Below are positions 2,339-64,000 of a DNA stretch of 64,000 nt, piece after piece. The notes beneath the pieces were generated by a model. The model was not told the origin of the DNA. It saw only the letters and a program-made list of their open reading frames with translations, and searched no databases. The stretch is from assembly GCA_016748015.1 (NCBI GenBank), contig JAAOMT010000543.1, positions 496,001 to 560,000 of the forward strand, written 5' to 3'. Numbering within the stretch: position 1 is the first letter of the stretch; every line of letters starts with the position of its first letter. This stretch comes from Geosiphon pyriformis uo1 (lineage: Eukaryota > Fungi > Glomeromycota). The position numbers were made by a program, and so were the translations under genes.

Positions 2339-2389
<51 letters not shown>

Positions 2390-4397
2390 ATAACTCAAAA
2401 TTACTGTTTTTATTTGTTCAAAATTTTAATTTTTCAAATTCTTATTTTATTCATATTTTTTAATTAAATTTTTTTTCACATTATATAAATAAAAAAGTTA
2501 TTTTATTATTAATAAAAGTTAATATTATCTTTTGTTTATAACTTTAACTTTTAATCATTAATCAACATTTATATAAATCACAAATTATAATTATAAAGAA
2601 TCTCTTATCTGGCAAATATATTTTTAAATGATTTCCACTCTTCTTATTTATTTATTTATTTACTTTTAAAATTTAAAATAATTGTTAACTAAAACATAAT
2701 TAATTCAACTTTATGCCAAGTTTAATAAACAACTGTTATACTTATTGTTTTTAAAATCCTCTTGTTGTTTTTTTAACTTTACGAACAACAATAATTAAAT
2801 TTTATTTATGATAAAATGAATGCCTATCTATTGGACATGCTTTTATTTATCCTCGGTGTATAGGTTCAGATTTTTACTTTTATCAATAAATCGCATTATA
2901 TGTTTGTCACATTGTGAAACGCTTTTTCTGTCTATTTTTTTACAAAGTTCACATAGGAAAACCCTTTCATTTCAAATTTGTTTGATAATTAATCTTGCAT
3001 CGGAACAAGTCAAATGATTATCAGATGTTTATATTAGATGATGTTCCTGATTAAGATTAATTCAATTGTTTGTTTGGGTAACAGTGAATTGTCTCATTAA
3101 GACGAAATTCAACTCTTTACCATTTTAGCTTTATTAAACAATTTTAAACAAAAAATTTTTAATTTACAAATTATTGCATAAAATATTTTAAACCAATTAG
3201 CAGGTGAGATTGGACTGTTTAAGTATATTTTTGTTTTTGAATGAATTTTATTCGTCAAAAATTTATCTTCAAAAATTTAAGGTATTGTTTATTTGGTCCA
3301 CATGCGTGAGAAGATGTGTTAGAATAGATTAGATTAGATTAGTTTTACAATTAAGGAATACAATAACCCTATTTTTGTGTGAATACCACTTTTCTATACT
3401 TCATCGAAACAAGCAAGACTTTGAATACTGTATATTAAAAAAATTTTGTAGCGAAAGGTAATTGGTTAAAATGGCTGATCAAAAAAAGAAATTAGATGAT
3501 GAAAATACTCCAAATTTTGTTCCGCAATTGAGAGTTACTTGATGTCAAGCAATTTTTTTCCACAATAAAACAACAATGAGTTATTGATAGATTGATTCAT
3601 CTAACGAAGATTATTTAAATGTCAAGAGAATTTGGTATTTTGAGGATGACATTAATCACGACTAAATATTTACTAATAATTCACCAAGTTTACCTCTAAT
3701 CCCGAAATTATATTTGGTTTAAACAATCTTGCGGATATATTAATTGGGTTTGTATTTGGGTGACAGTGTCTCAAATTTGTTCACTTTCATTGAAAAAAAA
3801 GCTGTTTCTTTGACCCGAGTTTTATAAGATATAGTTATTATGAGTAAACAGAAGCCACTCTGGCAAGCAACAAAGTTCAGTGAGATCTTCAACACAATTT
3901 TTCTCCGGCTGGAAAATGGCTGACACGTGAGACATATGAATACATGCTCAAATAAACAATTTAAAAGTCATATTTATCTTTCCAATTAAAGAAACTTTGT
4001 TTTTTAATAGTTTTCATAGTAATCAATTATTGTCCCGTTTTTTTGAATAATACCAAATATTCATGTGGGGAGAGAGAAGGGTGAACCATTTATAAACATA
4101 AGGAAACTTACAAGAGCTTATTATGTACGACCAAGTTTTTCCACCAAGGTAATTTCCATTTATAAAATATAAGAATATAACTTAAACTAAAAAAATATAC
4201 GTTATGATCTATTATGATCAAAAAGTGATGGTCAAGAGTTTTGAAAGCTTAGCATAAAATGAAAATGGTACCCCATGCATGGGAAAAAATTTTGAGCAAC
4301 TTTTTTCAGATAGATAAGGCTTGTTTTGAAAATTTTAATTCAAAGACATGATCCAGAAGAAAAGCATGCATTTGAGCATCTTTATAGTTTCGCATTC

Positions 4398-5597: not shown

Positions 5598-8500
5598 TTC
5601 GATTCCGAGGTTTTGGTTGGGAAGTTGCTAAAATGGAATTTTGTTTCTGGATAGTGAATTACTCGGCCGAATGATATGTGTGTGAAATGTGAAAATTTTA
5701 ATTCAAAGCTTGAATTTATTGTTGGTTAATGGTTTGCCAAAACTTTGGTAAGTTGGCTTTTTTTGGGGAAATCGATAAAAGATATTGAATTTATATTTTT
5801 GTTCTGGATTGTTCCTAGTAGAAACGAGATTAAAAACTGGAGGAGAAAGAGCAACTATTTTTAATTGGAATAAGGAAAGCTTATGAAGTGTGTGACTTTA
5901 TTGTTTTCATCAAATTCGTTTCAATTCAACATTCGAAATATTGATCAATGACGGAACAATTGAAGCACGTGAAGAGATAGAGAAATTATCTAACAATGCC
6001 TTCGTTAAAATAAAAGGCTGTTTTGGGATTCAAAAATGGATAGAAAGCAAGGTTTTATAATTTTTTCAACAATGCTAAATATTCTTTGATGTTATTAGAT
6101 AAGCGATGATGCTTTTAATAACCCTTTTTCGCTGAAACGGCAAAGAAATATTATTTGCTTGTATTTTTTCCCTGAACGAACAAGTCACTCGAGTTCCTTT
6201 TGTTTAGGTATTTTGACATGTGAAAATATTTGTTTGGGCGGACAGTTTTTTTTTGGTTGCTGCAGCGGGTGATTTTGTAATAACAGATATCCAGTGGAAC
6301 ACGAGTACAAAATGGTTAGTTTGGGTATAGCACCAGATGCAAACTGAACTAAGATACACATGTAAAATGTGAGTTATCATGGCACAAGCGAAAAATTTTA
6401 TGAGCGGCTGTCAAATGATTTTTTTGCTATCATGAAATCATCGAAATGTTAAGTTCCATTGTGCTTTCTTTTTTTTCACCCACGCAGAAGAGTTTTGATT
6501 GAATGAATGAATGAATGATTGATTGATTGATTGATTGATTTTTTGAAGTTTGATTTTTCTCGCTAACTACTTTCTTGCATATATATTACTTCTTTCAAGA
6601 TGCATAGTTATTGCTGCTTCAACTGACAGCCTATGCAGGGCTATACTTGCATTGCGTTTTTTTTTTTTTTAATGCAGCCTTGAAAGCTTTTCGGTTCGAT
6701 CCCACGTTTGAAAGCGTGGATTCATCTATGTCTCGAATTAACGTTTAAGACTAAATTTCAAAGCCTGCAAAGTCCTGAAATTACCCCATCTAGATAAGTT
6801 TTTAACATTGTAAACGCAGGCCGGAATCATTTAAATATTCCCATGTTTTACTGGTTCTAAACTCAGAAAATTTTTAGTCTAAAAATTATAAAAATCTATA
6901 TCCGAAAAAGATTTTTTTTTTGCGCCAAAAAAGAATCCTAATCGCAAATATCATGGGTATAAATAGTAGATTGTGATATTCTAATGCATAATATCCTGAT
7001 ATTGTTCCATTGTGACTAAAAACGGGACTTTGAGACAAACAATTGCGACATGAGAGAAATTTCTCAACAAAACAATGGATCTTTGAAAAAAACGTACACC
7101 ACTCAAAAATGCCCTGCATACACACACACACACAAACACACGCACAATTTTTTTTTAAAAAAAAGTTTTTTTTTTCAAAAAGACAAGAAATAAAGCAAAG
7201 TCAATTTATTTCACGGTCTATTGCATGAATTTTTTCAAATCTTGGGAAATTGCTTTTTATTTAATGGGTCACACTGCACGAGCGCAAATACCAAGCGTGT
7301 TTTTAAAAAATCATTATTCATCTATATCTCTCTTTATTACTCTGAAAAATTTTCATCGTCACACAGACAGTTTCCCACATGAAATTATGCTTGACTCTTA
7401 TTACTGTGCTGTATATGTAAGGGTTTTTATATTGATATCAAATTTGTGTGTGTGTGTGTGTGTGTGTGTGATGCATTTAGATGTCATAAAATTACTCAAA
7501 AGATCTAGTAAAAGAAGTTTAAAAAAATCAATTTCCCCCCGTGACTTTATTCTTTTTGCGTCTTGCAGCAGACTTGTTTCAAAAAACTCGTGCAAAAAAA
7601 AAGATTTTTTTTGTTTCGATTTCGTCATGTGCTTCTATAACGAGTATTCTTTTTTTCATCAAGATTTTTTATATATATATTGACAGGTAATTTTGGATCG
7701 AATTAACATTTGAATTTGAAATGAACTGCTAATACTTGAATTTATAAGTTGGGAAAACATTTATTAGGTAGAAAAAAAAATTGTCCAAAAGTTCTATTGT
7801 AAATAAATAGTAAATTTTAAGATAAAAACTAATGATTTTAAATTTCTCATTCTTGTATGATAAATATTCAAAATTTTACATGAAGTCCTTTTATATATAC
7901 GTTAATAACTTTAAAAAAAAACCCCCCTTTTCCATTTTTGCAGGTCAAAAGTTTGATCATTGAATAAATTTTTCATTTACTAGCTTTGATAGGGGAATCT
8001 TTCAGTGAGCAATTGTAGAATAAAATTAATATATATATATATCAAATAACACTTTTTTTAAATTTATCTTGACGAAAAAAAATCAATTTTTAAAGAAATC
8101 CTTTGTGGTTTAAAAAAAAAAACAAAGCTAATTATCAGATAGTTCAAAAGAGTAAACTTTTTCTAATGTTAATATTTGAATAAGGATCAAAAAAATTCAG
8201 AAAATCTTTTTTATCTTTTTAAAGCATGAATGGTGAAATAATAATCTTGAAATCTCGCGATAAATATAAATTTTATTCCAATTTTTAATTTTATTTTGAA
8301 GATTCAAACGTATATAAAGATATTTTGCATATATCTGTTTCAAAGTATCTTTTGAAGATATCTTGCATATATCCAAATTTCATGTGTAATTTTTGTTTTT
8401 GTTTTTACTTTATTAATTATTGAACGTAAAAATTCTGGTTCTCGCTAAGGAAGCAAAAGAATAATGATCAAAAGCTTTTTAACCTTCAAAAAAAAGGAAA

Positions 8501-12584: not shown

Positions 12585-13694
12585 TTAATTTCCTTTCCCA
12601 AATATCTTTTTCACGAATTTTCCAATATCACGATTAAAATCTTCATAGACGTCCCAAAAAAGTAAATGACCAGCTTTGGGATAGATTATTAGGGTAGCTC
12701 TCGAATTTGTGGCGAGTACCTTTGCCGATGAGACTGGCGTATTAACCAGACGGTCATCAGCACCAAAAATTGCCAGAATTGGAGTGGTGATGTTGCGAAA
12801 TATGTTAACATAACCATCATTATCACCGTATTTGAAAATTGAAGCTTATTTATAGCAGAAAAAGCAATATAAGAATTAGTTTCAATCGTTAAAATAATAA
12901 TAATAATAATAACCTTTTAAACTATGTTTAAAATAATTTTTTAACATACTTAGAGAACCTTCGCGATTAGTTGGTGGTGATGTAATAGCACCACCTAAAA
13001 AGAATGCCTTAACCCTCGGGTCCAATGGTTTGGCAGGAAAAAGATTAATAAATTTGCTAGTTGCATTTACAGCCGTGACCAAATCAGCCGAATACGTATT
13101 TGGTACTATTTCGTTAATAACCGGTACAATTTCTCCTAGATCTATTGTTGCTGCCACAAATATAAAGCCGGCTAACTTTTGCTGTCCATATTTTTTCAAA
13201 TACAAGAATGCCACAAGATTTCCACGAGACCATCCAACTAGAATAACTTTCTTTTTTTGATTGCCTCTAGTTGCTTTTTCTATAACAGCATTCAAGTCAT
13301 CCGCGTAGAGATCAACATTATTGTATTTAGTGATATCGTTTGGTGAATCACTTGCACCACACCCACGCTCATCCCATCGTACTAAATGAAACTTCTCTCG
13401 CAAAGATTTTGAAGTAAATTGTGGTTCCCAAACTAAACGTGTTCCTAAGTAACCATGTAAGAAAATAATTGTAGGTTTTTGTGGATCCCCTACTTCTTCA
13501 GCATAAATTTTTAACCCATCATTACTGGTCACTATGAAATTTTTTATGCCATCTTGATTCAACGATAAAAGAGATACTAGTGGTAGTTGTTGTTTTTCAT
13601 TTTTCAAAGGACTTGAAAAAAGAAATATGGGAAAGAAACATAAAAGTAAAATAAAAATTTGCATTCTTGAAGCTCTCATAAGAATAGTATTCAT
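12585..13694 (-). CDS. Alpha/beta-fold hydrolase (non-heme haloperoxidase/arylesterase-like) with N-terminal hydrophobic signal; 2 exons, intron 12949-12845
   Basis: IFLHGY oxyanion motif, WDERGCGAS, GWSRG nucleophile, FGADD (Asp) and IYPKAGHLLFW (His) are present. The intron is GTATGT...AAG. The start could be 13694, 13679 or 13664. Confidence 0.9.
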
Positions 13695-25734: not shown

Positions 25735-26249
25735 ATGAATATCCTCAACTTATCTTTATCAGGTGAACAGAATTATCTAATTTAAATTAAATGATGAATT
25801 ATAATTTTTCTGCATTTCGATGATTTCACCATTTCACTTGTAAATAGAAAAGGCAGAATTACATATTCGAGTTTTTCTTTTAGTTTTAGATCAAAACCTA
25901 AGGACTCTAATTTTTAAATACACTTGCCTATGAAACAAAAGTAAAATTCGTGAGGGAAATATGGGTACACTAGATATCCTGCTATTTTTTTGAACGTCTC
26001 GAGAAATTCGGACTTTTTTAATTTGAATTTGCAAGATAGCACGAATACAATATATTTTGCAGATCTCAGTTGTGAGGTTTGTTGCGTGCTAGAAAGAATT
26101 CTTCAAAACGAGGATGGTAATTCTGACGATTTAAATATCCCCTTTTCCATGAGCCTATGTTATCATTTTTCACCTTGCATATTCAAAAATTTAATTAAAA
26201 TAAGATCAAATTGTCTTTTTCACTTAAATTTTTTAAAAATATAATTAGA

Positions 26250-26946
26250 ATTTATTATTGTTTTTGTTTATTGTTATTGTTTAAATAATTAAGTAAAAAA
26301 ATAAGAAAAAAATAATTTATTTTAAAGTGTAATAATTTTAATTATTAATTATAATAAAACAGTTTCAAACTTAAGTAAAATAAACTAATTAATCTATTAA
26401 AATTAATAATTAGTTAATTTTAAGGTTATTAATCTATAAAAATTGCAAATTTTAAAGTATTTATTACAAAATAAAATCAAAATACATTTTTAAAAAAAGA
26501 AGCTTTTTTTATATATTTTTTATAACACAATTTAATAATTAAATGTATATTTTATCAAATTATAAAATATTTTAAATATTTTAACATAATGTTAGATTTT
26601 TTAAGAAATTTTTTAATGTTACATAGTTTAGAGTATTGCATATTCTGATTACTACATTTAGTTACACTTGTACTTTATACAAATTAGATATTAATTAAGT
26701 AATAATTTGGTTAAGTAATAATTAAATAAATGTAAAATAATAATATATACTAATTAATAATCGAAATTAATAAAATAATTAATAATAAATGTTATAAAAA
26801 TAAATTTCAATTTCAATTAATACTACAGGAAAAAAATTTAAACAAAATTTTTTTTTTCCAAAATTAATTAATATTATTACTATTTATTTAAAAAATTTTA
26901 AAAATTTTAATAATAAATTAGTAACTAAGTTATTGTTTCTTCAAAC

Positions 26947-26984
<38 letters not shown>

Positions 26985-28450
26985 GCATAATAATGTATTA
27001 ATTAAATTTGTTTTGAAATAATATTTAATTATATTATTTAGTAAAAAAAATTTTAATTAATTATTACTAATTATAAAACAAAACAAATTATGTTTTAATA
27101 TACAACTTTTTTTAATTATATTAATAATAAGTTGGTTATCAAAAATAATATTAAACTTTTTTATATAAAATTTGTATTTTAGATTTTTTTTAAATATTAT
27201 TATAATATTTGGTTTTGCTTTTTTTTTACGATTGTTGTTTGTATAATATTTTTTATCTATTTTTTTTAATAAAAATTTATTTGAAATATTTAGTAAAGTT
27301 TTTAATATTAAGTTAAAATTTATTGACTTATAATAATATATTATTATTTATTTTAAAGTTTTTAAATTTTGACTGATTACATATAGAAAAAACATGAATC
27401 ACACTTATTTTAAAATCTTTTATAATTGTATTATAATAAATAGTAATTAAACTGTATTTATTAAATAAAAACTAAAACTATTTTTATTTGTTAATTAGTT
27501 TTAATAACAAAAAATAATATTTTTTTTAATCAAAAAAGTAATTACATTTTAAAATATTTTTAAATCAAATTAATTAATTTTTTTAATTATATTATTTTAA
27601 ATATAATATTACTATAACTAACAAAGTTTAAATTATATAACTTTTAAGTAATCAGTTATAATTAAAGTTTATATAATTAATTTATTAATTTAATATTTTA
27701 TATTAAAATTATTCTTTTTATTGTAGTTTATATTGTTATAATTAATAAAAAAATTTGGTTTTAAGTTAATTTTATTAAGTTTTAATTATAAAATTTTATT
27801 TATTTATTAAATTTATTATTAAACTAATTAATTTTTAATAATTTTAATAATTTTTTTGTTATTAATAAAATAGTTTCAATTTTAAATAAAAATATTAAAA
27901 CTTTTGTTATTAAAATACAAATTAAGATTTTTAATAAAATTTAAAGTAGTTTATTTAAAATAAATTTTGTATTAACAAAATTATTTATAAATATGTAATA
28001 TAATTTTTAATAATAAAGATTCAAATTATATTAAATACTTAAGAATTTTTTCTTTTTTTTATTAGTATAATATAGTTTTAATATAAATTTTAATAGCTAA
28101 TTACATATTAAAATTCCATAAATCATGTTTATAGTTAATTAAGTATTGCAATTTATATGATAAAAAACTTTACTTTGTTAAAGCAATTTAAAATATAATA
28201 TAATATAAATTTTGACACAAAATTTATTTTTATCAATTTAATTTATGAATATTTCAATATTTCACACAAAAATTATATAAATATAATCAACATTTATAAT
28301 TGTAAAATAAAATTTAATATATTATTGCTTTTTTTTATTTGTATTTTCTTGAAATTTTGTGCCTAAATTACTTTTTTATTATTTTATTTAACAAATTTTT
28401 TTTATAAAAACCAACATAACACTTTTTATTTTAAGATAATAAATTTTTCA
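26250..28450. other. Extremely AT-rich block with almost no CpG, probably decayed repeat/TE sequence
   Basis: About 2.2 kb with very few G/C, no ORF in the track and an embedded (TTA)n. Boundaries are approximate. Confidence 0.6.
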
Positions 28451-35664: not shown

Positions 35665-36222
35665 ATGAATCAGCAACCTTCTAGCGATCATCACAACCAT
35701 TTCGTCGGCAACCAACAAAACCTCTCTCTCGAAAATAATGAATCTATTTATCCGATTCTCTATTTTGAAAATCAAAAAATTCCTCGCGTAGATGGTAATG
35801 AGACTTCCTCATTTAACCAAGCTCAATATCACCCGTCGTTGCATTCAGAATCGGATATTTATTCAGAAATTATGAGTTATTCTTCCCAAACTCTACTATC
35901 AAACGAGTCCCAAGAATGGATATTTCAGCACAATAATCACAATAGTAATTTTAACTCTTTGGCCCCAGACAACCAAGCTTACTCTATACAAAACCATGAT
36001 CCCCAATTTAACCATTTCCAGAATTTACAACAAAGCCCTCATCTGATTTTATTTGAAGACAAATTAATATTACGGGAAGATATTTTGAACATAGAGAAAG
36101 ATATTTTGAATGGGCAACGAGAAATTTTGAATAAAGAACGAGAAATTTTGGATAAAGAACGAGAAATTTTTAAGAAAAGGGAAGAATTAGCCCTACTAGA
36201 AACTAAATATAATGCTTATTAA
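35665..36222 (+). CDS. Intronless orphan protein, N/Q/H/S-rich, with C-terminal heptad repeats (coiled coil)
   Basis: 185-aa ATG-initiated ORF ending in REDILNI EKDILNG QREILNK EREILDK EREIFKK REELALL. Confidence 0.6.
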   Translation: MNQQPSSDHHNHFVGNQQNLSLENNESIYPILYFENQKIPRVDGNETSSFNQAQYHPSLHSESDIYSEIMSYSSQTLLSNESQEWIFQHNNHNSNFNSLAPDNQAYSIQNHDPQFNHFQNLQQSPHLILFEDKLILREDILNIEKDILNGQREILNKEREILDKEREIFKKREELALLETKYNAY

Positions 36223-48220: not shown

Positions 48221-48723
48221 TATCAAGTGAAAAGGGTATTTTGGCGAAGAGGTTTTGTGATAAAACAGTATAAAAAATGCCATTTGTTCAATTGAGGAAA
48301 TGTTTACTTTTCACGCGTCTTATTCTCGCACGCGAATTTATTTTGCTAACTTTGCCACAATACCCCTTTTTACCTTAATTATAAAAATAGAACAAATTTA
48401 TGAAATAACTCGTCAAATTTGATACTAATCTTTATCAGTAATCAATTTAAATGGTATTCATAATTAAAATCTTTGAAATAGCATAAAACAAGAAAGCATG
48501 ACATTTATTTTACCAAGTTAATGAAAACAAATTCCAAGCTTTTCGATTAATCATTTGACTGTTGCAAAAGAAATTGGTATTTATATGAATATGCAGATTT
48601 TTTAAACCAATGAGTAACAAAGAATAGCATAATAATGTAAAATTTCTCTAATGTTAGAAATATGCAAGGACTCTAAATGAAAATAAATTGCGTGTATATA
48701 GCCACTATCATAATCTGTTGAGA

Positions 48724-51700
48724 TCATTCCAAAGCCAAAATTTTGATTGTCCCCTGACTATTAGCTGCCAAGACAGTATTTGAATTCTTTTTCCAGCAAA
48801 CAGAACTTACAAATAGCGAAGGATCACTTTCAGGGACTTCTTCTCCCTAATGTACAAAGACCCATGGCAATATATGAATAAAAAATTAATTTGATTGAAA
48901 TAAATGATAAAGATTAAAAACTTATATTACCGTCACGTTATTGATACTTCCAAAGTTGAATTTGACAACAGGCTGACATAAATTTTTGTAATATGCAAAA
49001 ACAGAGTTATCTTCACTTCCACAAGCAATCCAATCGGATGTGGTGGTAAGACCAACAAAATTCTTTTCATTAATATGGCCGGTATATGTGCGGACACAAG
49101 ACTGAGTGTTTGTATCCCATAATTTAAGAGTGCTGTCCGTTGAACTAGAAATATGTAAAATATAGTTAATGGTTGAAAAAAGCCAAGATTCCGATCTTTA
49201 AAGAAAGAACATACGCGGATACAAATTCGTTGGGACCTATGAATTTTACATAAGATACAGCTTTACGATGCCCTTTGTAAACAAAAACAGGTTCACGAGT
49301 TTGCCGGAGATCATAGTAATGAATGTGGTGGTCTAAAAACCAAATATTTATAGTGGATTAATAAACAAATTATTTGCGAAATTTATTATAATCACCAATT
49401 ACCTGCACTTCCAAAGGCAATATAATGGCTTATATCAGGTTTGAATTTAACACAGCAGATATTGGCTTTGCTTTCAATTGTAAAGATAGAATGTCTTTGG
49501 TTTGTTGACCAAATTTTTACTTTTATAAAACAGTAATTCCCCAATTAATGAAAATGAATTATTAAACAAAGTTTTAGCAAAAACTAATTCTCAAGAATAT
49601 TTTAGGCTTTACCTTTAGTATCGTCACTTCCACTGGCTAATTTCGTGGGATCCATTTGGCTGAAATCCACACTCCAAGCACGTTTTTCGTGCTCATCAAA
49701 TGTCATCACTTGAAGCCCTGAATTCACATCCCAAAGTGACACTGCACCATCATAGTCGGCACTGACAATTTGGGCTTTAATATAGGTGTTCCATGAAAGG
49801 CAACTTTAAATGGAGAAAATAATTGATTTATTGAAAGAACAAACAGGAAAATGAGCAAAGTGTTGTGAAATATAGAAACGAACCTAATTTTACTTTTGCA
49901 AGTCATCTCTTTAATTGGATAATGCAAATATGTATCCATTGCTTTCCTATTATTAGCAGCACTATCCCTAATAGGAGATGAAATAAAATCAGGTGAAGTT
50001 GTCACCAATTGTCGTTCAATGTTACCATATTCAAATATTTTGATTTTTTTGGTAACACCAGCAGTTGCAAAATATTCGTCATCTCGATCAAATTCAATGC
50101 TAGAAACGATCGATGATGAGCCAAATAAATTTCCGTATCTAAGCGTGTTGACCAGGCGAAACTCCCCATATCTTGTAAAGGCGTTAAGTGTATCGGTAAA
50201 CTTTGAAAGACCCCCGGGAGTGTTAGCTTTAAATTGTTTGAGATAATGTATTAAGTTGGGTGTTACATATAGGTATAAATGAAATGACCAATAAAAAAAA
50301 CCTGAGGGTAGTCGATAAGAGAAATAACAGTCTTCTAGATCATCAAAATGTTCCTGTACACGTTGCTTTTTAATTTGCAGCAACTTTTGGTCAATCAACC
50401 TCTGATCGGCTAAATCCGGAGAAATTCTTGTTGATTTGATTATCGTAAAATTTATCATCAAAGGTCAAGCAAAAGAAGCAAGGTCTTAAAATAAAATCTT
50501 CACCAGGGTAAATACCTTTCCATATGATTAGCATCATTGAAAAACCAGTCTTCCTAAATAATATGGAATAAATTTAAGTTCAGTCGTATTTTGAGCTTAT
50601 CAATAAGAAAGACTTGTTAACATACAGCGTGCTTTCGCTTCCGGGGGATTTGCGTTTCAGAATTTTTTTGTTGGGGTTCACCCTCTGGAACAGCAGTCTC
50701 AGCGACATCATTAGGAACTTGAGCCCCCAAATTGTTGTTTGATGTCCCTCCTGTAATTTCTTCTTCTGCTTGTTGATTAATTTCTTTTTGCTGCAACTGC
50801 TGTTCCCCCAAAGATCGAAGTTGCTCTTGTGTCAATGCGAAATCATGATCTAAGCAATCTAATTCATTAGTCAATTGTTCCAGTTTCTAAAATTTGGATT
50901 CTCAATATGATCAGAGATAGTAAAGAAGGAAAAATGACATATATTAAGAACTTACCTTTTCCTTTTTTGTTTTCATCATTGACAAGAATTCAGATAGTAC
51001 ATCTAGCTCGAGCTCTTTTTCGGCTGATGCCTTTTTCTGTTTCTTGGCTAATAGTGTCATCATCACATCATCTATATCTAATAGCCAAATTTGAATCGAT
51101 GAGGAGAGGCAGAAAAAAACAAAGGGAAAGTTTGAATTATGCAAAACCTTCAAAGCTCATGTCTGTGCTCATTATTCTGTCTTTCATCTGTTTGGTTTGT
51201 AAATGTATCGTCGAATCAAATTGGCCTCCCGTTATCGCTGGAGCTTTTTCTAACAATCGGTTCACTAATGGGGAAATTTATAATGAGAAATTATAAAAAG
51301 TTGATGAATGAAATAAAAAGTTATATGAATGAAATAAAAAGTACTTACATAAGAAGTTAGGGAATATTTGATCCCGCATTAAATACGCGCCACATGTAGG
51401 ACAATCTTTCTTACGGTCTAAATGTTCAACGATGCAGACATAGCTGCAAGATAAAAAGCTTTGGTTTGAGATCATATGGCAAGTCGCTTGACCGACAAAG
51501 CTTTACTCAATGAAGTTGATGTCAACAAAAAATCCTCTAAACTTGCCAAAACGAATGGCCGCATTTCCCCATAAAAGCTTCCTTTATAATTTGAAGGCAA
51601 ATTGGACTGGATAAAAATTATAATTACGAAAAAAGGTAAGTGATTGAAAGAAGAGATCAGTCTATGCTCGAACCATCCTTGATAGAACATTATAAGTTAT

Positions 51701-51995
51701 AATACCATAAAAAATCTTCGTTGTTCAGATTATTGTTCTGAAAACTGTCTGAGGTTGCCGACGAGGAAGTACCAGGAACAAAAAAAGCCAAATTAGAGCT
51801 GGTCTGTGGGGTCAGAGGCACGTTCTGTAAGGATGCACCAGAATTCGTCCGAACAGTGGGTGGTATTGAAAACTTTGTAACTATCAACGGCGTTTCTTCC
51901 TGTTCTTCTTTAACATGTACCGTATCTGATTTTGTCCCGGTATATCGGCTGGGGTCATCAGCGGAATTTGCTGTTTCAAAGTTGTTAGAACGCAT
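48724..51995 (-). CDS. COP1: COP1/RFWD2 E3 ubiquitin ligase (RING-HC, coiled coil, WD40), multi-exon with one GC-AG intron
   Basis: RING CPICLQII.EAFM..CGHSFCY.CI..HL....DCPTC; [11 protein letters not shown]; [28 protein letters not shown]; [11 protein letters not shown]; ANICCVKF; [11 protein letters not shown]; [11 protein letters not shown]; C-terminus [12 protein letters not shown]. Confidence 0.95.
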
Positions 51996-52571
51996 AATTA
52001 AATAGATATCAAATTTGCGAAGTTGAGTCAATTATGCAAAATCAAATACACATAATTCAGTTATATATGAATTTCCCGAGCGTCTTTTATAAATATGAGG
52101 GTATTCTGATAGTGACTAGTGGCGTTGCTCGCGTGTAAGTGGTTTCAATTATTAATTGTTAATGAGTCTACAATAGATATTGATTCATTTTTGATGCAGA
52201 TCACTTGATGACTTAATATCAGTTTTTGATATTTTGATACATCTGATCAGCTGATAAGATATGCGTGAAAAAAAGACCAATCAGCTGAGCGCAATATTAT
52301 CACTGGTTACAATCCGAGTTTTGAGGATTAAAATGAAAGTTTTTTGAAGAAATGGACTTTTAAAATTCGTGAAATCCATCTGTGATGAATTAATATGAAA
52401 CTAACTCACTAAAGAATATTTTCTCTCTGGAAGAGTGAAAACTTATTTATTTTAATACCAGCTTTTTTAAGAAATAATAAAAACCTTCTCAAAATAAATT
52501 AATTGAAGGTTATAACTCTTACCCCTAATTATTGTATATTAAATGATAACAGATTTTAAATTTTTTTCATA

Positions 52572-55127
52572 TTATCTTTTTCTCTGTGCTTGTCCCAGTT
52601 GATCATATAGCCAATTTAATGAATTGCCTGCTCTCATAGCTTCAAGAGAGTCTAAGATTGCTTGTTCATCAGTAAGTTCTTTAAGACGACGTTTGATCTC
52701 TTTAACAATTTTTTTTCGGCGAATTAATCTCGCACCATTATCGGATGCCCATTTGTTCCCATATCTGGCCAACATATCTTGTATGGAAGGATTTCCATTT
52801 AAACCGGTATTCCATTCATTCCAAACATCGTAAACGGTCTGCAGAGTCCCCAGTTCGGGAAGTCGATAATATCGAGGTCGTGCGGTTGACGTGGATGATA
52901 CAAGGGTATCAGGATATGAACTAAGAGATTTTGATATACTTCGATCATCGAAATAGCCATCAAAAGATTCTTTTTTATCTTCTTGACGAGGATTATCACG
53001 TGGGCTAATAAAATCTCCCTTATTGCGATCTTCAGCATTAACTTCAATATTAAGATTATCGACGATATCGGTATTTTTCCGATCTTCAGCTGAAGACTGG
53101 GTTTCCCTATAAATATTTATGCTTTGCGAAGGTATTACCATAGCTGGAGTCAATGAGGACATCGAATTCAGAGTTCCTCCTGAACTTGAACTTTTAACCT
53201 CTTCTAATCCTTGCTTCTGAACAAATAAACTGTCGTGGGAGGGAGCTTCAGTATAATTATTTGTGCTTATCCCGACATAACTGCTAATTGGCGACGAGTT
53301 GTATTCTCTTTTGCGATTTGTTTCATATTCGCGTGGAGACGGTGGAATGTAACTGGAAAATGCTGTATTTACAGCGAAATCACCAATTGGCCTCGAAGTC
53401 AAATTATTTATTGATGAAGCATTAAATTGAGACGAATTCGGAGTAATGGATGACGGATTTGAATGATCAATCGGATTCGACGAATGAAGGTAAGATGCAG
53501 TCATATTATTTGGGCTTGAGGCATTAATATACGATGAAGCTACCTCAATTGGATTTGAGTTGTTTAAAATAGACATGGGAGTGTCCGTCGATGTCGGTGA
53601 GTTAATAAAAGATGAAGGAGTCTCAATATTATTCGCCTTATTCAAAAAAGAATGGCTAAGATCCCTTGTTTGACCCAGTGTATCATTGAAAGAAGAATTA
53701 TTGATGGTTGAGTTGGAAGTATTCACGAAAACTTGCATATCATCTATAGGCTTTGAAGATTCGATATAAGGCTGATGGGAAATGGTTTGTTCTAAAGGTT
53801 TAAAATAAGATGATGATGACGTATCTTTAGTTAGATTCGAGATATCCATGAATGATGAAGCACTTCCCCTTGGACTCGGCGCGTCTATAAATGGGGATGG
53901 CTCCTGAGTGAGGCTGGAGTCTTCTTTGAAATGAGGGGCATGTTCCGTGTTTGGCAATGGCATTTGGTTCATATGATGATCATTTTGATCTGGGGAATGC
54001 GAGAAATGAGTATCTTCATTAGAGTTTGGAGGACTATTAGTCATTTGAGCAATAGGATTGAATGGCATTGCTGTTTCCAGAATGGTCGTACCAGCATTAT
54101 TTGACCCGGAATTCTCAAAAGAGCCTGCGGTTTTTTCCAAGGGATTTTCATGAGGCATTATCGACAAAGGAATTCGATCTCCATCTCTATCAATTTCGTT
54201 ATCACACTGATCTTTTGGTAAAGAGTTAGTATTTTCCGTGCTTCTCCTTGGTGGAGTAACACTTCTAGTACTCATACGGCTGGAAATTTGCGAATTAGAA
54301 TTTGAGGGGTTACCAATGGAGGGTTGATTAAAAGCCTCCGTAGAAGACGGGCCTAGACTGTTTCTTCGACTTACAATAGGTGAGTTAGGGTTGGCAGTAT
54401 TACTTCCTGAAGAATGGATGTCCCCTGAGCTGATTCCATTTTTCAAATTCGTATTATTGGCAATTGGATTATAATTTGGAATTGATGAGATTTTAGGTGA
54501 CATGGGAGTGAAAGTGGGTTCCATTTGCTGGAAGGTAACAGTGGCATCATCATTGGAATTATTTGCAGCTGTAGTCACTGGAACAATTTCGGTAAAAACT
54601 GAGGTAGTTGTCGCTCCATTGGTTGGATTAGTTGTGGTAACAGTGGTCAATTTGATTGTGACCGTTGTAGTTGTAGTGATATTACCATCCGGTGCAATAT
54701 TTCCATTTTCTGGCATTGGATGCTGCCCTGGTAGTGATGGTGCTCCGCTGTAATGAAAATTTGGTATCGGTGTCGGCGTCGGCGTTGCTCTCGGAGGAGG
54801 AATCCTTGGTTCCGGATTCGTTCTAGCTGGTTGAGCTCGTTCATTATGAAGCCTAGAATGACCGATTATCACTTGAGGAACATCTGGAATAATATCGTCT
54901 CGAGTTTGTTGTTCAACGCGCTCAGTCAGTTCTTGTGGCACGAAACGTTTTGGAATTGGAACTATAATTTCAGGGGAAGTATCTTCTGTCGCACTTTCTG
55001 TCGACTCTATTTCTGCAACTGCTGTCAGGTCTATCCTGCGTGGCCTAGGTTTTGTTCGGGGTGGAGCCCCATTTATATCTTGAGTTCTTTGGTCACTATA
55101 CGACTTGGAGCGTGTTATCTTTCCCAT
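52572..55127 (-). CDS. Intronless 851-aa low-complexity protein with C-terminal GCR1_C DNA-binding domain (Gcr1/Hot1/Msn1-type)
   Basis: C-terminal QTVYDVWNEWNTGLNGNPSIQDMLARYGNKW...RRKKIVKEI matches GCR1_C. The first ATG is at 55127. Confidence 0.85.
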   Translation of the reverse strand: MGKITRSKSYSDQRTQDINGAPPRTKPRPRRIDLTAVAEIESTESATEDTSPEIIVPIPKRFVPQELTERVEQQTRDDIIPDVPQVIIGHSRLHNERAQPARTNPEPRIPPPRATPTPTPIPNFHYSGAPSLPGQHPMPENGNIAPDGNITTTTTVTIKLTTVTTTNPTNGATTTSVFTEIVPVTTAANNSNDDATVTFQQMEPTFTPMSPKISSIPNYNPIANNTNLKNGISSGDIHSSGSNTANPNSPIVSRRNSLGPSSTEAFNQPSIGNPSNSNSQISSRMSTRSVTPPRRSTENTNSLPKDQCDNEIDRDGDRIPLSIMPHENPLEKTAGSFENSGSNNAGTTILETAMPFNPIAQMTNSPPNSNEDTHFSHSPDQNDHHMNQMPLPNTEHAPHFKEDSSLTQEPSPFIDAPSPRGSASSFMDISNLTKDTSSSSYFKPLEQTISHQPYIESSKPIDDMQVFVNTSNSTINNSSFNDTLGQTRDLSHSFLNKANNIETPSSFINSPTSTDTPMSILNNSNPIEVASSYINASSPNNMTASYLHSSNPIDHSNPSSITPNSSQFNASSINNLTSRPIGDFAVNTAFSSYIPPSPREYETNRKREYNSSPISSYVGISTNNYTEAPSHDSLFVQKQGLEEVKSSSSGGTLNSMSSLTPAMVIPSQSINIYRETQSSAEDRKNTDIVDNLNIEVNAEDRNKGDFISPRDNPRQEDKKESFDGYFDDRSISKSLSSYPDTLVSSTSTARPRYYRLPELGTLQTVYDVWNEWNTGLNGNPSIQDMLARYGNKWASDNGARLIRRKKIVKEIKRRLKELTDEQAILDSLEAMRAGNSLNWLYDQLGQAQRKR

Positions 55128-55347
55128 TGCAAGACTAATGAAACAAGTGTTGGAGGTTCCAACCACCAAACATTAAACGTCATCGCCCATAATACAAGCG
55201 GAACGTAGCGTATTCTAATCTAGAACACGTGATTGCAAGTTAAAATGCTATTTATAGTTTGTCTTAAATTGTAATTAATTTGAAAATTTTAAATAAAATT
55301 AATAATAGATTAAAATATTCATAAATAAATTATTTTAAATTTAAAAC

Positions 55348-56095: not shown

Positions 56096-57809
56096 ACAAT
56101 AAAAAATTAATATAATTAATTATTTATAAAACAATTATTTTTGGGCCAAAAATTATTATTAAAAATTAAAAATTAAAAATTAAAAAATTTTAAGCTTAAC
56201 ATAGAAAAGGTTATAATGCAACAACATATATTTCTAAATATAAATTAAATATTTTTGGTTAATAAAGCCACATTAATAAAGTTGAGGCTGGGATGTAGAA
56301 AATTGGCTATTTTATTAATTAAAAGAGTTTTAACGATAATATTTTTTTCATTCCGGTTACTTTAATGCCCTTTTCAAATGCTTCTATTGGAGCAAAATTT
56401 TTTAGACATTTTTCGGTAATTTTTTTGAAATTTAATTTTTAACGGTATAATAAAAACCGTTTATTTAAATGTAAAATGATTGGGCGAAGAAGTAGCAAGA
56501 TTTAAAAATTGTTTCTAGTCGGATTATTCAACTTAGATATTTGAGTTTCTTATGCATCTGACTTCCGGCTTGAGGTTTAATAATCGATTCAAAACCTTAG
56601 ACTGATAAACAATAACGTATAAGGGTTTCATCTTTCAAAATTAAAAAACTAGCTTTTATACAACTTTTAGTTAAAAGGGAAGTCCAACTTTGAATTCGAA
56701 ATCTTCGTTAGGGTCATGTTTCGACTGGAATTATAAAGTATAATTGATCTTCAGACATAACTAAAAAGCTTTCAAACCAAATTTTGCGGAGTAGCAGATA
56801 CAAAAAATATGTATTGCCAAAATGATTTGATTGTACTGTGAGCTTTTGACAAATTATTGTCAACGACAATATTTATTTTACTTTACTCGAACGGAATCTT
56901 GTAGTTATGAAAAGCAAAAGAATTTTGATAAAAGAATTTTTATAACCTGCGTCTGTTCAAATTAAAAAAATTTTGAGTACAAAATGCCTATTGAATCTTT
57001 TTGAAAAATGGTAAATCCTTTGAATATATTTTCACATTTCTTGAAATTAATGTTGATAAGAATGTAAAACTAGTATTTTAATAAGAAATGTTGTTAGGTC
57101 CAATTTATCGTATGGGTCTCCCATAAGGCAGTGAAAATTTTCTTTGACTAAATTTTAAAAGGAAGAATTCATAATTAAAATGGTTGAGATTTTTCATTTC
57201 CAAATTCGTTGTTTACTTGCCTTATTTGATAATAATATCCCAGAGAAATATTAATTTGACCAATGAAAAAAAAATATCCACGATATATCCTAATCCAAAG
57301 CCTCAATCTATCATGACAAAAAATGAAAGCACACACCCTTAATTTCGTTCTATGATTATCATAATTAAGAAAAGTTTAATTATAGTACATTTAAAAGGAA
57401 AATAATAAAGGAATTTTTCTATATCAGTGTAGAATTTTGAAAATTCGGATTCTATAGCTAATCATTTATGTACTCAAGAAAATGTTTACCAGTTTAATAA
57501 AAACTCATTCTTTAAAATTTGTAAGAAAAAATTATTAGCATTTTAGGATTCTACAAAAGGAATATAAGTTATACAAAATTTACGTATAGAAAGGATATAG
57601 TATAAAAAATAGATTTCTGCCAAAAGAAAAACACTAATTTACGATATACATACATATATATATATATATAGTGGTATTTGCAAAATCAATAAATTCAATT
57701 GTCATTTAAATTCACCCTTTCAAAAAGATAACGTGGTCAATTTGAAACTTGAACCTCAAGCTCATCATACAATGTATTTCAGAAATTCTTAAATCTATTA
57801 CTCAATCCA

Positions 57810-59400
57810 TTAATTCCCAAGTGTACGAATTCTGTCCGTAGCCGTAAAACAACGGATTGGTAATTCTGGGTTCCACTTGATGCTTGCGCTACGCAACGAG
57901 CTCGTGATTGGGAGATTATTCCATAATGATTTAGCCATTAACGCATGAGTATTTAAACTTTTTTACAGAAGAAATTTTTTTTTATAAGTGGTACAATACT
58001 TTTACAAAAAATTTGCAAATTATGATTCTAATTTCAAACCTTGGATGAAAACAGTCAATGTTACTAACGGCCTCAATCGGAAAAGTTGTTAAATTGACAT
58101 CGATAGGTTGATAGACGACAGCAAACGAAGGATCCCGATTATGTTTTTGAGCATATTCCATCGCAATCCTTTCAATTGCACTTTTGTAAAGGACTGTAAC
58201 TTTGTCCATTTCTTGACGCTTCTTTTTCCCAATTTGGCCTGAGGTAGGAATTAAAATTTTAGTTAATCATTTGAAAAAACGTTTCAAACATAGATCAAAA
58301 TTAGCGTTTCTTAATTTCAAAAACACCTGGTAAAAAAGCACATGGACACCCAAATTGAACTTGTGGCAAATCTTTAAACCAACGACAATACTCTTTACCA
58401 TGGCTAAACTCATAAACTTGTGACACGTTAAATACGCCCATCAAATTCACGACGGTATTTGGTATATATCTACGAATCGATTCCAATGTTTTTCGAATAT
58501 TTTTTTCAAATTCAAGTGGGGCAACGTAGTTTCTTGTGCATATATTACAAATATCGTTTGAGCCCATGAATAGGTTTAAGAACTTGATGAGAGAAAAAAG
58601 TAATTAAATTACCATTTCCCGAGATTTCGAATTCAAATTTTAATAACTTTTTTAAATTTTTACGCTAACCTTGTAATCTTTCCTAGTAGCATTATATTTT
58701 GCCAACTGGTTCAACAAATATCTCATCTCATGTTCAAGATTTGTAGCCATTGCACCAGATTGAGCAGCATTCAACCTGTCAAAAAATGGCTTGTATCGAT
58801 TATCAGGGCAGAAATTGCCTAAAGGGCCAAGGAACAACAATTTCAAAGATTTAAGTCAAACATGCTCATGGAATATTTTAATGTTCATAATCGAATTTCT
58901 AAAAAATCTCCAATTTACTCACCAGCACAAATTTCAACCAAATGAGACCCGACACTGGCTCCAATCACATCTCGTCGATAAAATTTAATAAAATTGGCCA
59001 ATGACTCGGCATTCTTATCACCACCCATCGCAAAGCTAACACCACGGTGCTCTTTTAAATTTTTAATGGTCAGAGGATGGCCATGGTATTTTCCTTTAGC
59101 AAAGAATCCCGCTGTGATACTGTCACCTAAAGCCATTACGTATTTTATATCATCTGGTCGAAGATCGTGAACTGATTTTGCGCCAAAGAAACGTGGTGGG
59201 AGAGATGGGCACGAGGTTATGTTTGAAACGAAAAGTGGTTTAACTGGTTTCTGATTGAAAATTTTTGGGATTTTATGAGATCGAAATATACGGGTTATGG
59301 TGTATTTGAAAAAGATTTGTTGAGCAAGAAGGGATGGTAAGAGGAGTAGGATGAAAAGAGTGCAAAATCTGAAAATTAATTGAGATTTTTGAAAATTCAT
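57810..59400 (-). CDS. Phospholipase B1-like SGNH/GDSL lipase with N-terminal signal/anchor, multi-exon
   Basis: SVHDLRPDDIK.VMALGDSITAG, EHRGVSFAMGG, LNAAQSGA, FMGSNDIC and DCFHP|S...H...AKSLWNNL. Confidence 0.9.
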
Positions 59401-59883: not shown

Positions 59884-60845
59884 TTATCGGATCTCAATCC
59901 CAAAAACTCTTTTAGCAAACTTTGGAATATCCTCATTAAATTCCTTAGGAGCTTCCCACCACAATAAATGGGCCCACATTTTTATAGATTTTCAATGTGG
60001 CATAAGTTTGGTTGACTGAGAATGAAAATGGTCTAATTTCCGGTTTAGCTAACTGCGGTTGCGATAAAAATTGGGATTTTTTAAATTTCAAAAGGTTTCG
60101 ATTTAGTTGTAGTTTGCGTTTCCGAGTCCTGGAAAGGAGCAATAATACAAGAGAAAATTGAATTTTTGATTTTTGAGTTATACTTTAAGAAACTTTAAAA
60201 TCTTCGTAACTTACTAGCAATAGCAAATCTTAAAGCAGGAGTCGTCAGAGCGGGACCACCAAATAAAAATAATTTTAAACGTTCATTTCATGATTTAGCT
60301 GTAAAAAAATTAATATACTCTTTCAACCCTTTAACAACTTCGGTATAATCCTATGAAACCGTTCGAGCCATAACGGGTCGAATTTTTGAAGCAGAGGATA
60401 ACCATTTATTTAATGGCGCGGCTATTGGTATTAAAACCCTTGTCCAAACCTTTCTAAATATGTTAAACTCAATATACCTCCCGCCGACCAACCAGCCAAC
60501 ATGACTTTTTTTATTAGGGGACCCTTCAGTAACAGCGGCAATAACCGCGTTTAAATCATCAGTCAGAATTGAGAGGAGTTGTAACTCGTTAAATTTTTTG
60601 ATTTATTACTATCAAAAGTTCCCCGCCAGTCCCCAGGGGACTTGATGAAAGTTTTTGGTGAGAATCGGAGAAAGAAATTGTGTTTGGAATAAATAAAGAG
60701 TTTGTGAAATTCCGTGAGTCCAGATTATAGTTGGTTTAAAGTGGGTACCAAGTTCTTCTACGTAGATACGAACACCATCACTACTTTGTGTTAAGAGACT
60801 GTTGACTAATGGAGACATGGATAAAATTGTTGGTCGATTTATCAA
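59884..60845 (-). pseudogene. Disrupted paralog of the 12.6-13.7 kb alpha/beta hydrolase
   Basis: Colinear fragments SSDGVRIYVEELG..KPTIIWTHG, DDLNAVI..KKVMLAGWSAGG, FLFGGPA and ATLKIYKNVG/HLLWWE..EFNEDI.KF, with the same intron position. There are several in-frame stops and frameshifts. Confidence 0.85.
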
Positions 60846-61649
60846 TCATTTTGAAAATCAAAGTTTTCCAATGCTCGAGATTTTATGAAGATTCCGAGTA
60901 AAATTAGAAGTTTAAATAAATAGAATTTCATATTGAGAAATTTTTCATTTAAAAAGAAGTATCTTTTTTTTTATACTATAATGCATATTTAAAAGAATTT
61001 GAAATCGAAAATTTGATTCCCCAGGCCAAAAAAAAACGATTGAACACGAAAATCGCAAATTTAAATAAATTCATCATATTACCTGATAAAATTTTAAAAA
61101 ATAAGTTCGCTCAAGATATCTTATATGATTTTATTGCATGTTTAAATACAAATTATTCAGAAGACGTTTATTGTAACCATATCGAAATGAATATTCATGA
61201 ATAAGTAGAGCAAATATCATATTTCGTTACTATGTAAATTATTTAACGGTTATAAGATAAATAAATAAATAAATAAATGAATAAATCACAGACCTGAAAG
61301 CCTGGTGGTTTATATTGATTGATATATCTACGAAATGAATTTAGACGAAAGATTTAATTAATTTATTTTTATTATAAATTTTAATAAATTTTCTCGGGTG
61401 ATACAATGACTTTTGTAAAATTAAAAATTTAGTTACTAAAAATGAAATCAAGACTTAGTATACTCTTCCAATCCCAATCTTTGACTTTAAATTGGACAAT
61501 TTTATTCAATTAGAATTTATTATAATTTGGAATATATGGAATAAAAAAAAATATTGGAATAATTTTAAAATGGCTTTCTCTAATGCTCAAAAGTAAATTC
61601 AAGATTTCTTATTCGTCTATTGCCTCAGATTTTGAAATTATAAATCCAT

Positions 61650-61908
61650 TTAGCAAGGCGCATTCGATGAACCACAGAAGCCACCATTAGTATTATATTT
61701 AATATCGCCACCATAGACCACTGGCTTACGGATAATCGGAGGGCTTTGGTATCGTTCGTAGGGGTCAGGAGAGACAATCGGAGGGCTTTGGTATCGCTCG
61801 TAGGGGTTTTTGGGATGTTCATGGGCAAAAAATGGAATTGCCATAGAGAAGGTAATGAGTAAGGTAATGGATAGGATCAGGAGAGAAATTTTTTTTTTGG
61901 ATAGCCAT
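61650..61908 (-). CDS. Small secreted repeat peptide (85 aa if one A is removed from the A10 run at 61889-61898)
   Basis: ATG at 61908 plus a 1-nt correction gives MAIQKKISLLILSITLLITFSMA|IPFFAHEHPKNPYERYQSPPIVSPDPYERYQSPPIIRKPVVYGGDIKYNTNGGFCGSSNAPC*. A TATAAATA lies at 62021-62028 on the same strand. Confidence 0.65.
61734..61807. repeat. 32-bp direct repeat x2 (period 42 bp) encoding PYERYQSPPI
   Basis: Copies at 61734-61765 and 61776-61807 differ at one base (GAA/GAG), which is synonymous in the peptide frame. Confidence 0.95.
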
Positions 61909-64000
61909 GGAATTAAGTTTTTATTGAGGTTTGAATGCGATTTCAAATTCGATTTTAGTTTCTTGTCTCGATTTTTTCAATTTTGATGTTTAACCAGAAC
62001 TTCCAGCGACCAATTTCATGTATTTATATTCTTTAACCAAAAGAATTTAAATAATGAATGGGTTCAATTAAAAGAAAATTTCTTTGACAGAAAACTAGCT
62101 TACTTAAAGCCCCGAACCGGTTTCGTGATATCATTTATTGCGGCTGAGTCAATTATTATATTGCTTCTAGGTCAATTATCGTTGATTAATTGTACGGTGG
62201 TGACTATTTTTATCATCTTTTATGATCATACAGGTCATGCATGGGCTTTGCCTTATACAGAATTTTTTTCATATGCTTGTATATTGAATAAACAAAAAAT
62301 TTGAATAATCATAAAAATATCAATTTTGCCTTGCTAGAAAAATCTAATAAAAGAGATCAGGATATCTTTTTGATTAAAAATAAAAAAAGAAACAAATAAA
62401 TAAGTTATATTAATAAAACATTGTAATAATAATTTCTATAATTTCATCTACACAAAGATTCCAATTTAATTAAAATATGAAAATTTTAAAGGTTTAGCTT
62501 GTTAATTCAACATTCCATTTAAATTTCGCTAATTCGATCTAATAAAAAGTCATGTATTTCTCATAAAAATCTGGAAATCATTTGTTTTTTCTTTCAAATA
62601 TAAAGTCATGTTACTAAAATCAAATGCTGACAGAAGAGTAAATATTCTATTCTTTAATTAACTTTTATGCTCATGTATTTCAAACTCAATCAATCAATCA
62701 ATCATTAATGCTTATTATGTCTTTATTTATTGGTTTGAAATCTCCATAGGAATTTTCTAATTTCAAAAAATTCTTCACTAAAGTTTGAACCTTGTGAAAA
62801 ACTTGAATCTAAAATGGTTTCGAAATAAGAAACTGCTTTTATTTACTAATAAGTAGTGCCTAGTCTGTATTAAATTTACGTTTTAAACATGGAGTGACTT
62901 TTAAGTAAAACTTTTCAGTAGATTAGAATAATTCAAAATTTAAGGCGTTATATTTGATTTTTATATATAAAAATGCTAATAATCATCTTTAGCATTGAAA
63001 ATATCAATGATTGATAATTATTTATATCTGTCAATCTAATACAAAAATATTAAAAGTTGATATTTAAACGAATATTTACAACAATGATTATAATGAAATG
63101 GTTAATATAATTAAATATTTTATTTAATAGCTTATATTTTATAAATTTATTAATTTAATAATATTTTTTTTACCATTAACTCTCATTTCTTCAAGTAAAT
63201 TAATTAAAACACTTTTTGAAATAGTACCTAATAAGTTGAATAATTTTTTTCTATATTTCTTTTGATTATCCCCCAAATATTCTCAAAAGGATTTTTTTTA
63301 TGGCCAGTCCTAATGAATTCTTGAGTAAGACGATTTCTATGGTTAGGGTCATTATCTTGTTAATGTCGCCATCTTTTTTCGATTAAATGCGCAAATCTCG
63401 TTATCCCTGTGAAACAAACAAAGATTACTCTTCTCTATTTTAAGAAAGCGGTCCAAAGAGCTGAAATGTCGTTTCATCAATAAATAAAATCTTATTCCAT
63501 GATTGTTACTTAAGATTGGACGTTTTTTTTTGATATGCTTCAAGGACCAATGGGTTCGAAATCGTCGAACACGAGACTGCTGTCAAGTTTTGTTTTGTCA
63601 CATCCGTGGCTGGTTTTTTCCAGTTTGACCAGATTGCGCATTGAAATCTTTGTGGCAATGTATATTTCTCTTGCCCTTTTTCCAGCAATAGTGCTTTGCG
63701 TTGTTTTTAAATATGCGATTTGGCCATTGTGCGAGTGTTTTCAATTGAAGAATAAAAATTTAGTATTCAGAGGAAAAAATAAAAAATCTCATACACCAGT
63801 TCAACAGGCTGTACGAGATTTTTAGTTGTGAACAAGGTGTTTACAGTTTATCTATTAAGAAATTAATGCTAATATTTATTAAAATAAATTTGAACAACAA
63901 CTCAATCAATAATTTCAACGAGTTGTTAAATTACAATTTTTGCATTCAAAATAAAAAGTCAATTTCCACAAGCCAGATTGTTTTCGTTTAAAGGTTGAAT

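Follow-up and report, generated by a model that had tools for sequence, protein, structure and literature searches.

Does a short minus-strand reading frame that looks like a secreted, repeat-containing peptide, but whose first AUG lies out of frame with its signal-like stretch, belong to a working gene, a broken gene, or no gene at all? We consider this question for a locus of Geosiphon pyriformis, to our knowledge the one fungus that is known to live in endosymbiosis with a cyanobacterium. Positions refer to the window, that is, the whole stretch of 64,000 nucleotides that was analysed, unless another piece is named. A preliminary description of the locus had listed an out-of-frame ATG, an A10 homopolymer, a signal-like stretch, two copies of a decamer, an RK dipeptide, and a cysteine-containing tail, and all of these elements are present.

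Organization of the locus

The frame of interest runs on the minus strand from 61889 to 61650. It comprises a hydrophobic stretch of about 14 residues (mean Kyte-Doolittle value of 2.75 in the best 11-residue window), an S-x-A motif followed by I-P, two copies of PYERYQSPPI (61805-61776 and 61763-61734; period 42 nt), an RK dipeptide at 61730 with proline directly after it, a terminal C-x6-C, and a TAA stop codon. The h- and c-region of the signal are out of frame with the first AUG (61908), and the two sides of the break were analysed separately or with an X placed between them. The predicted mature peptide, 18% proline and 10% tyrosine, is located entirely 3' of the break; no fold is predicted for it (AlphaFold2, single-sequence model; pLDDT 61, pTM 0.16). 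Upstream, the peptide frame is open from 61976, the nearest in-frame stop lying at 61979. The first AUG has a T at -3, unlike the neighboring lipase and hydrolase genes, and the second ATG (61844) has the same weak base at this position. Coordinates of all features are collected in Table 1.

Table 1. Features of the peptide locus in order of reading on the minus strand.
Feature	Position	Strand	Remarks
Candidate TATA box, TATAAATA	62021..62028	-	53 nt upstream of X2 contig end
X2 contig, probable transcript island	61681..61968	-	Sole part of 3 kb with a matching X2 contig; unspliced over the A run; adapter at 61681 end
In-frame UUG, possible near-cognate start	61944..61946	-	A at -3; would give a 98-aa precursor with a long n-region
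First AUG and out-of-frame 29-aa ORF	61819..61908	-	Stop at 61821-61819; first AUG past the X2 contig end
A10 homopolymer, likely frame-break site	61889..61898	-	Run length exactly 10 nt
Signal-peptide h- and c-region	61839..61889	-	17 codons, S-x-A end; heuristic scoring
Second ATG, in peptide frame	61842..61844	-	NCBI model G9A89_015309 begins here
Predicted mature peptide and TAA	61650..61838	-	62 aa; 11 Pro, 6 Tyr, 2 Cys; about 7.0 kDa; disordered
Tandem duplication	61728..61811	-	2 x 42 nt (14 codons); 10-residue identical core
C-terminal C-x6-C	61653..61676	-	Second Cys lost if the NCBI intron is real
Putative intron implied by NCBI model	61617..61672	-	56 nt; removes last Cys; donor GTTCAT, poor match to fungal consensus
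Two AATAAA hexamers, candidate 3' end signals	61501..61521	-	Starts 61521 and 61506; weak, AT-rich background

Evidence for a coding gene

The two repeat copies offer one line of evidence for coding. Their 30-nt cores differ at a single base, and this difference is silent in only one of the three minus-strand frames, the peptide frame; it is also silent in one plus-strand frame, but a stop closes that frame. The preliminary description had used the silent difference as support for coding. The observation itself holds for the minus strand, but it carries little weight, and an alignment extended to 35 nt contains a second difference, which is a V/I change. Stronger evidence than this single silent change comes from the codon-sized period of the repeat, from a local GC peak (52% over the peptide locus, in a background of 15-40%), and from the rarity of the overall pattern. 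The combination of an ATG, an A run of at least 8, a signal-like stretch, and an ORF of at least 50 aa is found at a single place in 82 kb of this contig, namely the present locus, and once among 40 Markov-simulated sequences of 82 kb. Scaled to the 128-Mb genome, this corresponds to about 40 chance cases of the pattern, the internal duplication not yet being counted; with some tens of chance cases genome-wide, the repeat and the read evidence matter.

It is unlikely that a signal-like stretch, a 14-residue tandem duplication, and a closing C-x6-C came together by chance. We regard the locus as a genuine orphan gene that encodes a small secreted peptide, that has a wrong start in the public annotation, and that is most likely frameshifted in this isolate. 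To this extent the proposed secreted peptide precursor stands: the presence of a small gene built in this manner in a Glomeromycotina genome is supported. The functional families proposed for it do not stand, as discussed below. No damage is seen in the remainder of the peptide frame, as would be expected of a very recent break but also of a gene that is still used.

The A10 run in sequencing data

Three public runs (X1-X3), all from one sample, were used: their assembled contigs were aligned on 60300-63300, and these Logan contigs drop minor variants. Contigs of X1 cover nearly all of this interval at a depth of 85-91, and the X1 contig across 61387-63300 has zero mismatches and zero gaps, with a depth of 91 at the A run. 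The X2 contig (depth 37) is likewise free of gaps and mismatches, and thus carries A10. The idea that the frame break is a sequencing error is therefore not borne out, A10 being present in contigs of both runs, and a plain consensus error is unlikely; this agreement is to be read with the caveat that X1 and X2 come from one sample, that X1 may be the source of the assembly, and that minority alleles and slipped transcripts are invisible in contigs.

Probable transcription of the locus

The X2 island starts 60 nt upstream of the first ATG and 53 nt downstream of TATAAATA; it takes in the AT-rich leader and omits the nearby hydrolase remnant of 37-40% GC. It also coincides with the local GC peak, and compositional bias in a DNA library could have produced it; the TATA candidate taken alone is not above chance (at least two matches in 70 of 200 shuffles). 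On balance, the locus is probably transcribed. The preliminary description had named three observations that would count against it. The first, a missing transcript, probably does not hold, the X2 island being transcript-like though the run is listed as 'DNA?'; the other two lean against its reading, since the contigs of two runs carry A10 and the searches gave no homologs.

An upstream exon with an in-frame ATG was also considered and is unlikely: no CAG or TAG acceptor lies between the TATA candidate and the A run, and the X2 contig has no loose end at 61968. As a separate matter, the listing of X2 as 'DNA?' sits beside an RNA-seq-like appearance in this interval; if the run is RNA, it would be a usable expression resource for this genome.

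Search for relatives

The peptide appears to stand by itself. Word searches with the 79-aa and 62-aa pieces gave no match beyond the gene's own NCBI model, and the same was true of phmmer against 1.84 billion representatives. Searches of the ESM Atlas (no usable match), Pfam, and JGI metagenomes gave no peptide match either. Within its own genome, searches by protein, by DNA, and by three degenerate patterns recovered only the locus itself, all else being at control level, which makes it a single-copy gene with no paralog. Two long proteins matched in protein searches were set aside as unrelated, their alignments running through a transmembrane helix or a repeat.

Orthologues may exist unannotated in other Archaeosporales, since protein sets frequently lack short orphan genes. 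Synteny with Ambispora gerdemannii ends before the peptide locus: the WD40/RING and GCR1_C genes, 7-13 kb away, are kept, and in the syntenic Ambispora piece (L017) the genes beyond this conserved pair differ and include no peptide orthologue.

Fate of the gene and its product

We favor, at somewhat better than an even chance, the reading that G. pyriformis has a lineage-specific gene for a small secreted peptide and that, in the isolate sequenced, a break of the frame at the A homopolymer has disabled it. The signal-like stretch immediately 3' of the break, with its S-x-A then x-P, argues for a broken secreted gene, and a second decayed gene, the hydrolase, is its neighbor; against this reading, there is no homolog to display the intact state or selection. 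The break would lie in the Lys-coding part of the signal peptide and would be a recent frameshift at a mutation-prone run. Transcription would persist from the TATA promoter, and on a transcript starting near 61968 scanning ribosomes would mostly begin at AUG 61908, which gives a meaningless product of 29 aa. Secreted peptide would form in small amounts at most, and the gene would be transcribed but mostly silent. Leaky scanning, given the T at -3 of the first AUG, could reach 61844 and yield a cytosolic 64-aa peptide.

An intact product would enter the ER, have its signal removed after S-x-A, and be released as a single uncut disordered peptide of 62 aa, whole because it contains no protease sites. 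Its mature form would contain the Tyr/Pro repeat twice and end in a small disulfide loop. If the gene is real, we tentatively suggest that the product serves as a wall or matrix peptide of the hypha, the spore, or the Nostoc-holding bladder, held in place by oxidative Tyr cross-links; a ligand for a receptor of the fungus itself or of Nostoc comes next and is more doubtful. In most cases, disordered secreted peptides rich in Pro and Tyr belong to the wall or matrix, where Tyr cross-links anchor them, and it is for this reason that we rank the wall or matrix role first.

In terms of its immediate yield, the locus calls for a minor change to the annotation and adds one small secreted peptide gene without known relatives. 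More broadly, A-run frameshifts in the Lys-coding n-regions of signals can hide or kill small secreted-peptide genes.

Alternative readings

The best surviving alternative, though an unlikely one, is that the gene functions at a low level: through initiation at UUG 61946, which would require no frameshift, or through minority slippage at A10, by transcripts or by ribosomes. The frame is open from 61976, and the UUG, with its A at -3, falls within the X2 contig, 22 nt from the end of the latter; in yeast, initiation at UUG is known (GRS1). However, 22 open upstream codons are not unusual for AT-rich DNA. Slippage has a precedent in Pol II, which on an A9 run yields about 15% full-length dystrophin in one patient (PMC12946587). 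Against it, ribosome sliding in a bacterial in vitro system is small on A9/A10 and robust from A11, a threshold under which A10 falls (PMC4363877). Moreover, no structured frameshift stimulator is predicted in the RNA at the A run (z = +0.55), and the contigs hold no slipped form, which is an insensitive test. The locus resembles known A-run slippage alleles (DMD A9, PMC12946587; Thermus dnaX, PMC5009743) in having an A9-A10 run at the break and in being seemingly transcribed, but differs from them in that contigs reveal no slipped transcript and the run has no conservation and no sign of programmed use.

If such leaky reading were true, the locus would offer an example, rare among nuclear genes of fungi, of secretion controlled by recoding, and the peptide would be a candidate signal in the fungus-cyanobacterium endosymbiosis. 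The fullest form of this idea is a working symbiosis peptide for which Pol II slippage at the A10 run, or the UUG start, determines the dose: a gene that looks dead would then supply small amounts of a ligand with Tyr repeats and a disulfide loop, directed at Nostoc or the bladder wall. We regard this form as highly doubtful.

It is improbable that most nuclei, or the fungus in nature, carry an intact gene for an ordinary active small secreted protein, with A10 as an error of the consensus or an allele at the level of the culture or of single nuclei. Homopolymers are the commonest site of indels, and a single sample represented by contigs leaves room for hidden minor alleles; yet two libraries gave an identical A10 at depths of 91 and 37, and at a 10-mer the consensus of short reads can usually be trusted.

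A further reading takes the public annotation at face value. The locus had been described as unannotated, but it is G9A89_015309, an NCBI model of 59 aa that is identical to the peptide frame, starts at the second ATG, and is without the signal peptide. Were this model correct, translation from 61844 would give a cytosolic peptide of 59-64 aa, and the hydrophobic stretch would be 5' leader. The existence of the annotation and the weak context of the first AUG, which permits leaky scanning, speak for it. However, it leaves unexplained an in-frame signal-like stretch just upstream, its own start is equally weak at -3, and its intron has a poor donor, and we think it improbable. The donor is not decisive: two donors in the neighboring lipase gene, placed by eye, are likewise loose, so the poor match of GTTCAT does not exclude the NCBI intron. 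The X2 contig stops 9 nt short of this putative donor. Whether the C-x6-C pair exists depends on whether the intron is real.

Comparison with known peptide families

The nearest described class is that of the Glomeromycotina secreted disordered proteins, and the peptide is a member of no named family. The AGLs and secreted IDPs of this group, which include Geosiphon RIC1-3, are small, secreted, disordered, repeat-containing, and poorly annotated, as the intact peptide is predicted to be (Schultz et al. 2022, PMC8786786); its putative signal would also be similar in length to their 22-23-residue signals, and its x-P mature start to that of some (PMC8786786). Its size is within the AGL limit of at most 200 aa, with a signal broken from its start codon, and its Pro+Gly+Ala content of 29% is below the more than 40% of AGLs and within the 15-39.9% class. 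In contrast to AGLs, it is not Gly/Asn-rich and has no GPI tail; it is Tyr-rich, ends in a Cys pair, is single copy, and has a broken frame. No sequence similarity was found between the peptide and Glomeromycotina AGL/RIC proteins.

The preliminary description had instead looked to fungal processed peptides and to plant wall proteins; that the gene encodes either a Kex2-cut RiPP precursor or a plant extensin/PRP mimic, broken or not, is very improbable. KEPs are recognized by KR, RR, or KK sites that would divide the precursor into no fewer than four pieces and by at least three repeats (Le Marquer et al. 2019, PMC6339444). The peptide shares with KEPs and dikaritin precursors a repeated Tyr-containing unit and, as a candidate signal peptide, has an h- and c-region that is out of frame with the first AUG, but its repeats are two rather than three or more and are not separated by basic sites, KR, RR, and KK being absent from the mature part. 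The dibasic RK, which had been taken for a processing site, is not usable by Kex2, since proline comes next. A search of the genome for UstYa/DUF3328, run without a positive control, gave no PF11807 match, and the neighbors observed for the peptide gene are those for a lipase, for a hydrolase that is dead, and for a protein of Gln/Ser repeats.

Extensins and PRPs are defined by the motifs Ser-Pro3-5, Tyr-x-Tyr, Val-Tyr-Lys, and PPVxK. The peptide would similarly be secreted and is rich in Pro, Tyr, and Ser, and it has YxSPP and KPxVY look-alikes: YxSPP is found in 0.7% of shuffles and a one-mismatch KPPVY in 1.8%, for motifs that were picked post hoc. Mimics of plant peptides, CLE among them, do occur in AM fungi (PMC12037060), and P4H-like 2OG oxygenases, which might form the hydroxyproline that is glycosylated in extensins and PRPs, are present in the genome. 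However, none of the defining motifs is found in the mature part: Ser is followed by Pro2 only, Tyr-x-Tyr and Val-Tyr-Lys are absent (Tyr spacing is Y-x-x-Y), and in place of PPVxK pentamers there is one KPVVY. The peptide further differs in its 62-aa length, its two repeats, and its Cys tail; no homolog was found in plant-symbiotic AM fungi, and the known partner of Geosiphon is not a plant but the cyanobacterium Nostoc (PMC8786786). As for plant peptide hormones (CLE, PSY/RGF), the peptide has no CLE-like motif and no Asp-Tyr start.

Genomic neighborhood

A lipase gene and a decayed hydrolase adjoin the peptide gene, as the preliminary description had noted. The lipase (about 57800-59400, minus strand) is multi-exon, secreted, and GDSL/phospholipase-B-like, with weak Pfam matches when scanned exon by exon. 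The decayed alpha/beta-hydrolase (60198-60845, minus strand) contains in-frame stops, has no X2 coverage over 60300-60845, and shares 32% identity over 211 columns with a paralog at 12882-13694.

Upstream of the peptide gene, 63100-63800 on the minus strand holds fragmented, stop-riddled coding-like sequence that may be left over from a transposon; short segments of it are matched by several further X1 contigs. Just beyond the window on the same side, the adjoining piece (L014) carries a Gln/Ser/Thr repeat gene at 2280-3910 on the minus strand, in which a unit of exon plus intron (about 240 nt) occurs in about 4 tandem copies with near-identical introns and whose tail is, by eye, CsbD/stress-protein-like. 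A COP1-like RING/WD40 gene lies directly downstream of the GCR1_C gene both in the window (about 48700-55169, minus strand) and in Ambispora gerdemannii (L017, 9878-16470); the Ambispora annotation merges the two into a single 1419-aa model (P0005), so that they represent either a true fusion or a pair of genes that is conserved. Two Gln/Asn-rich ORFs that resemble each other and end in a coiled coil, at 35665-36222 on the plus strand and at 6390-7004 on the minus strand of L014, are apparent paralogs about 30 kb apart. Finally, the window contains an AT desert at 26001-28000, where GC drops to 12%.
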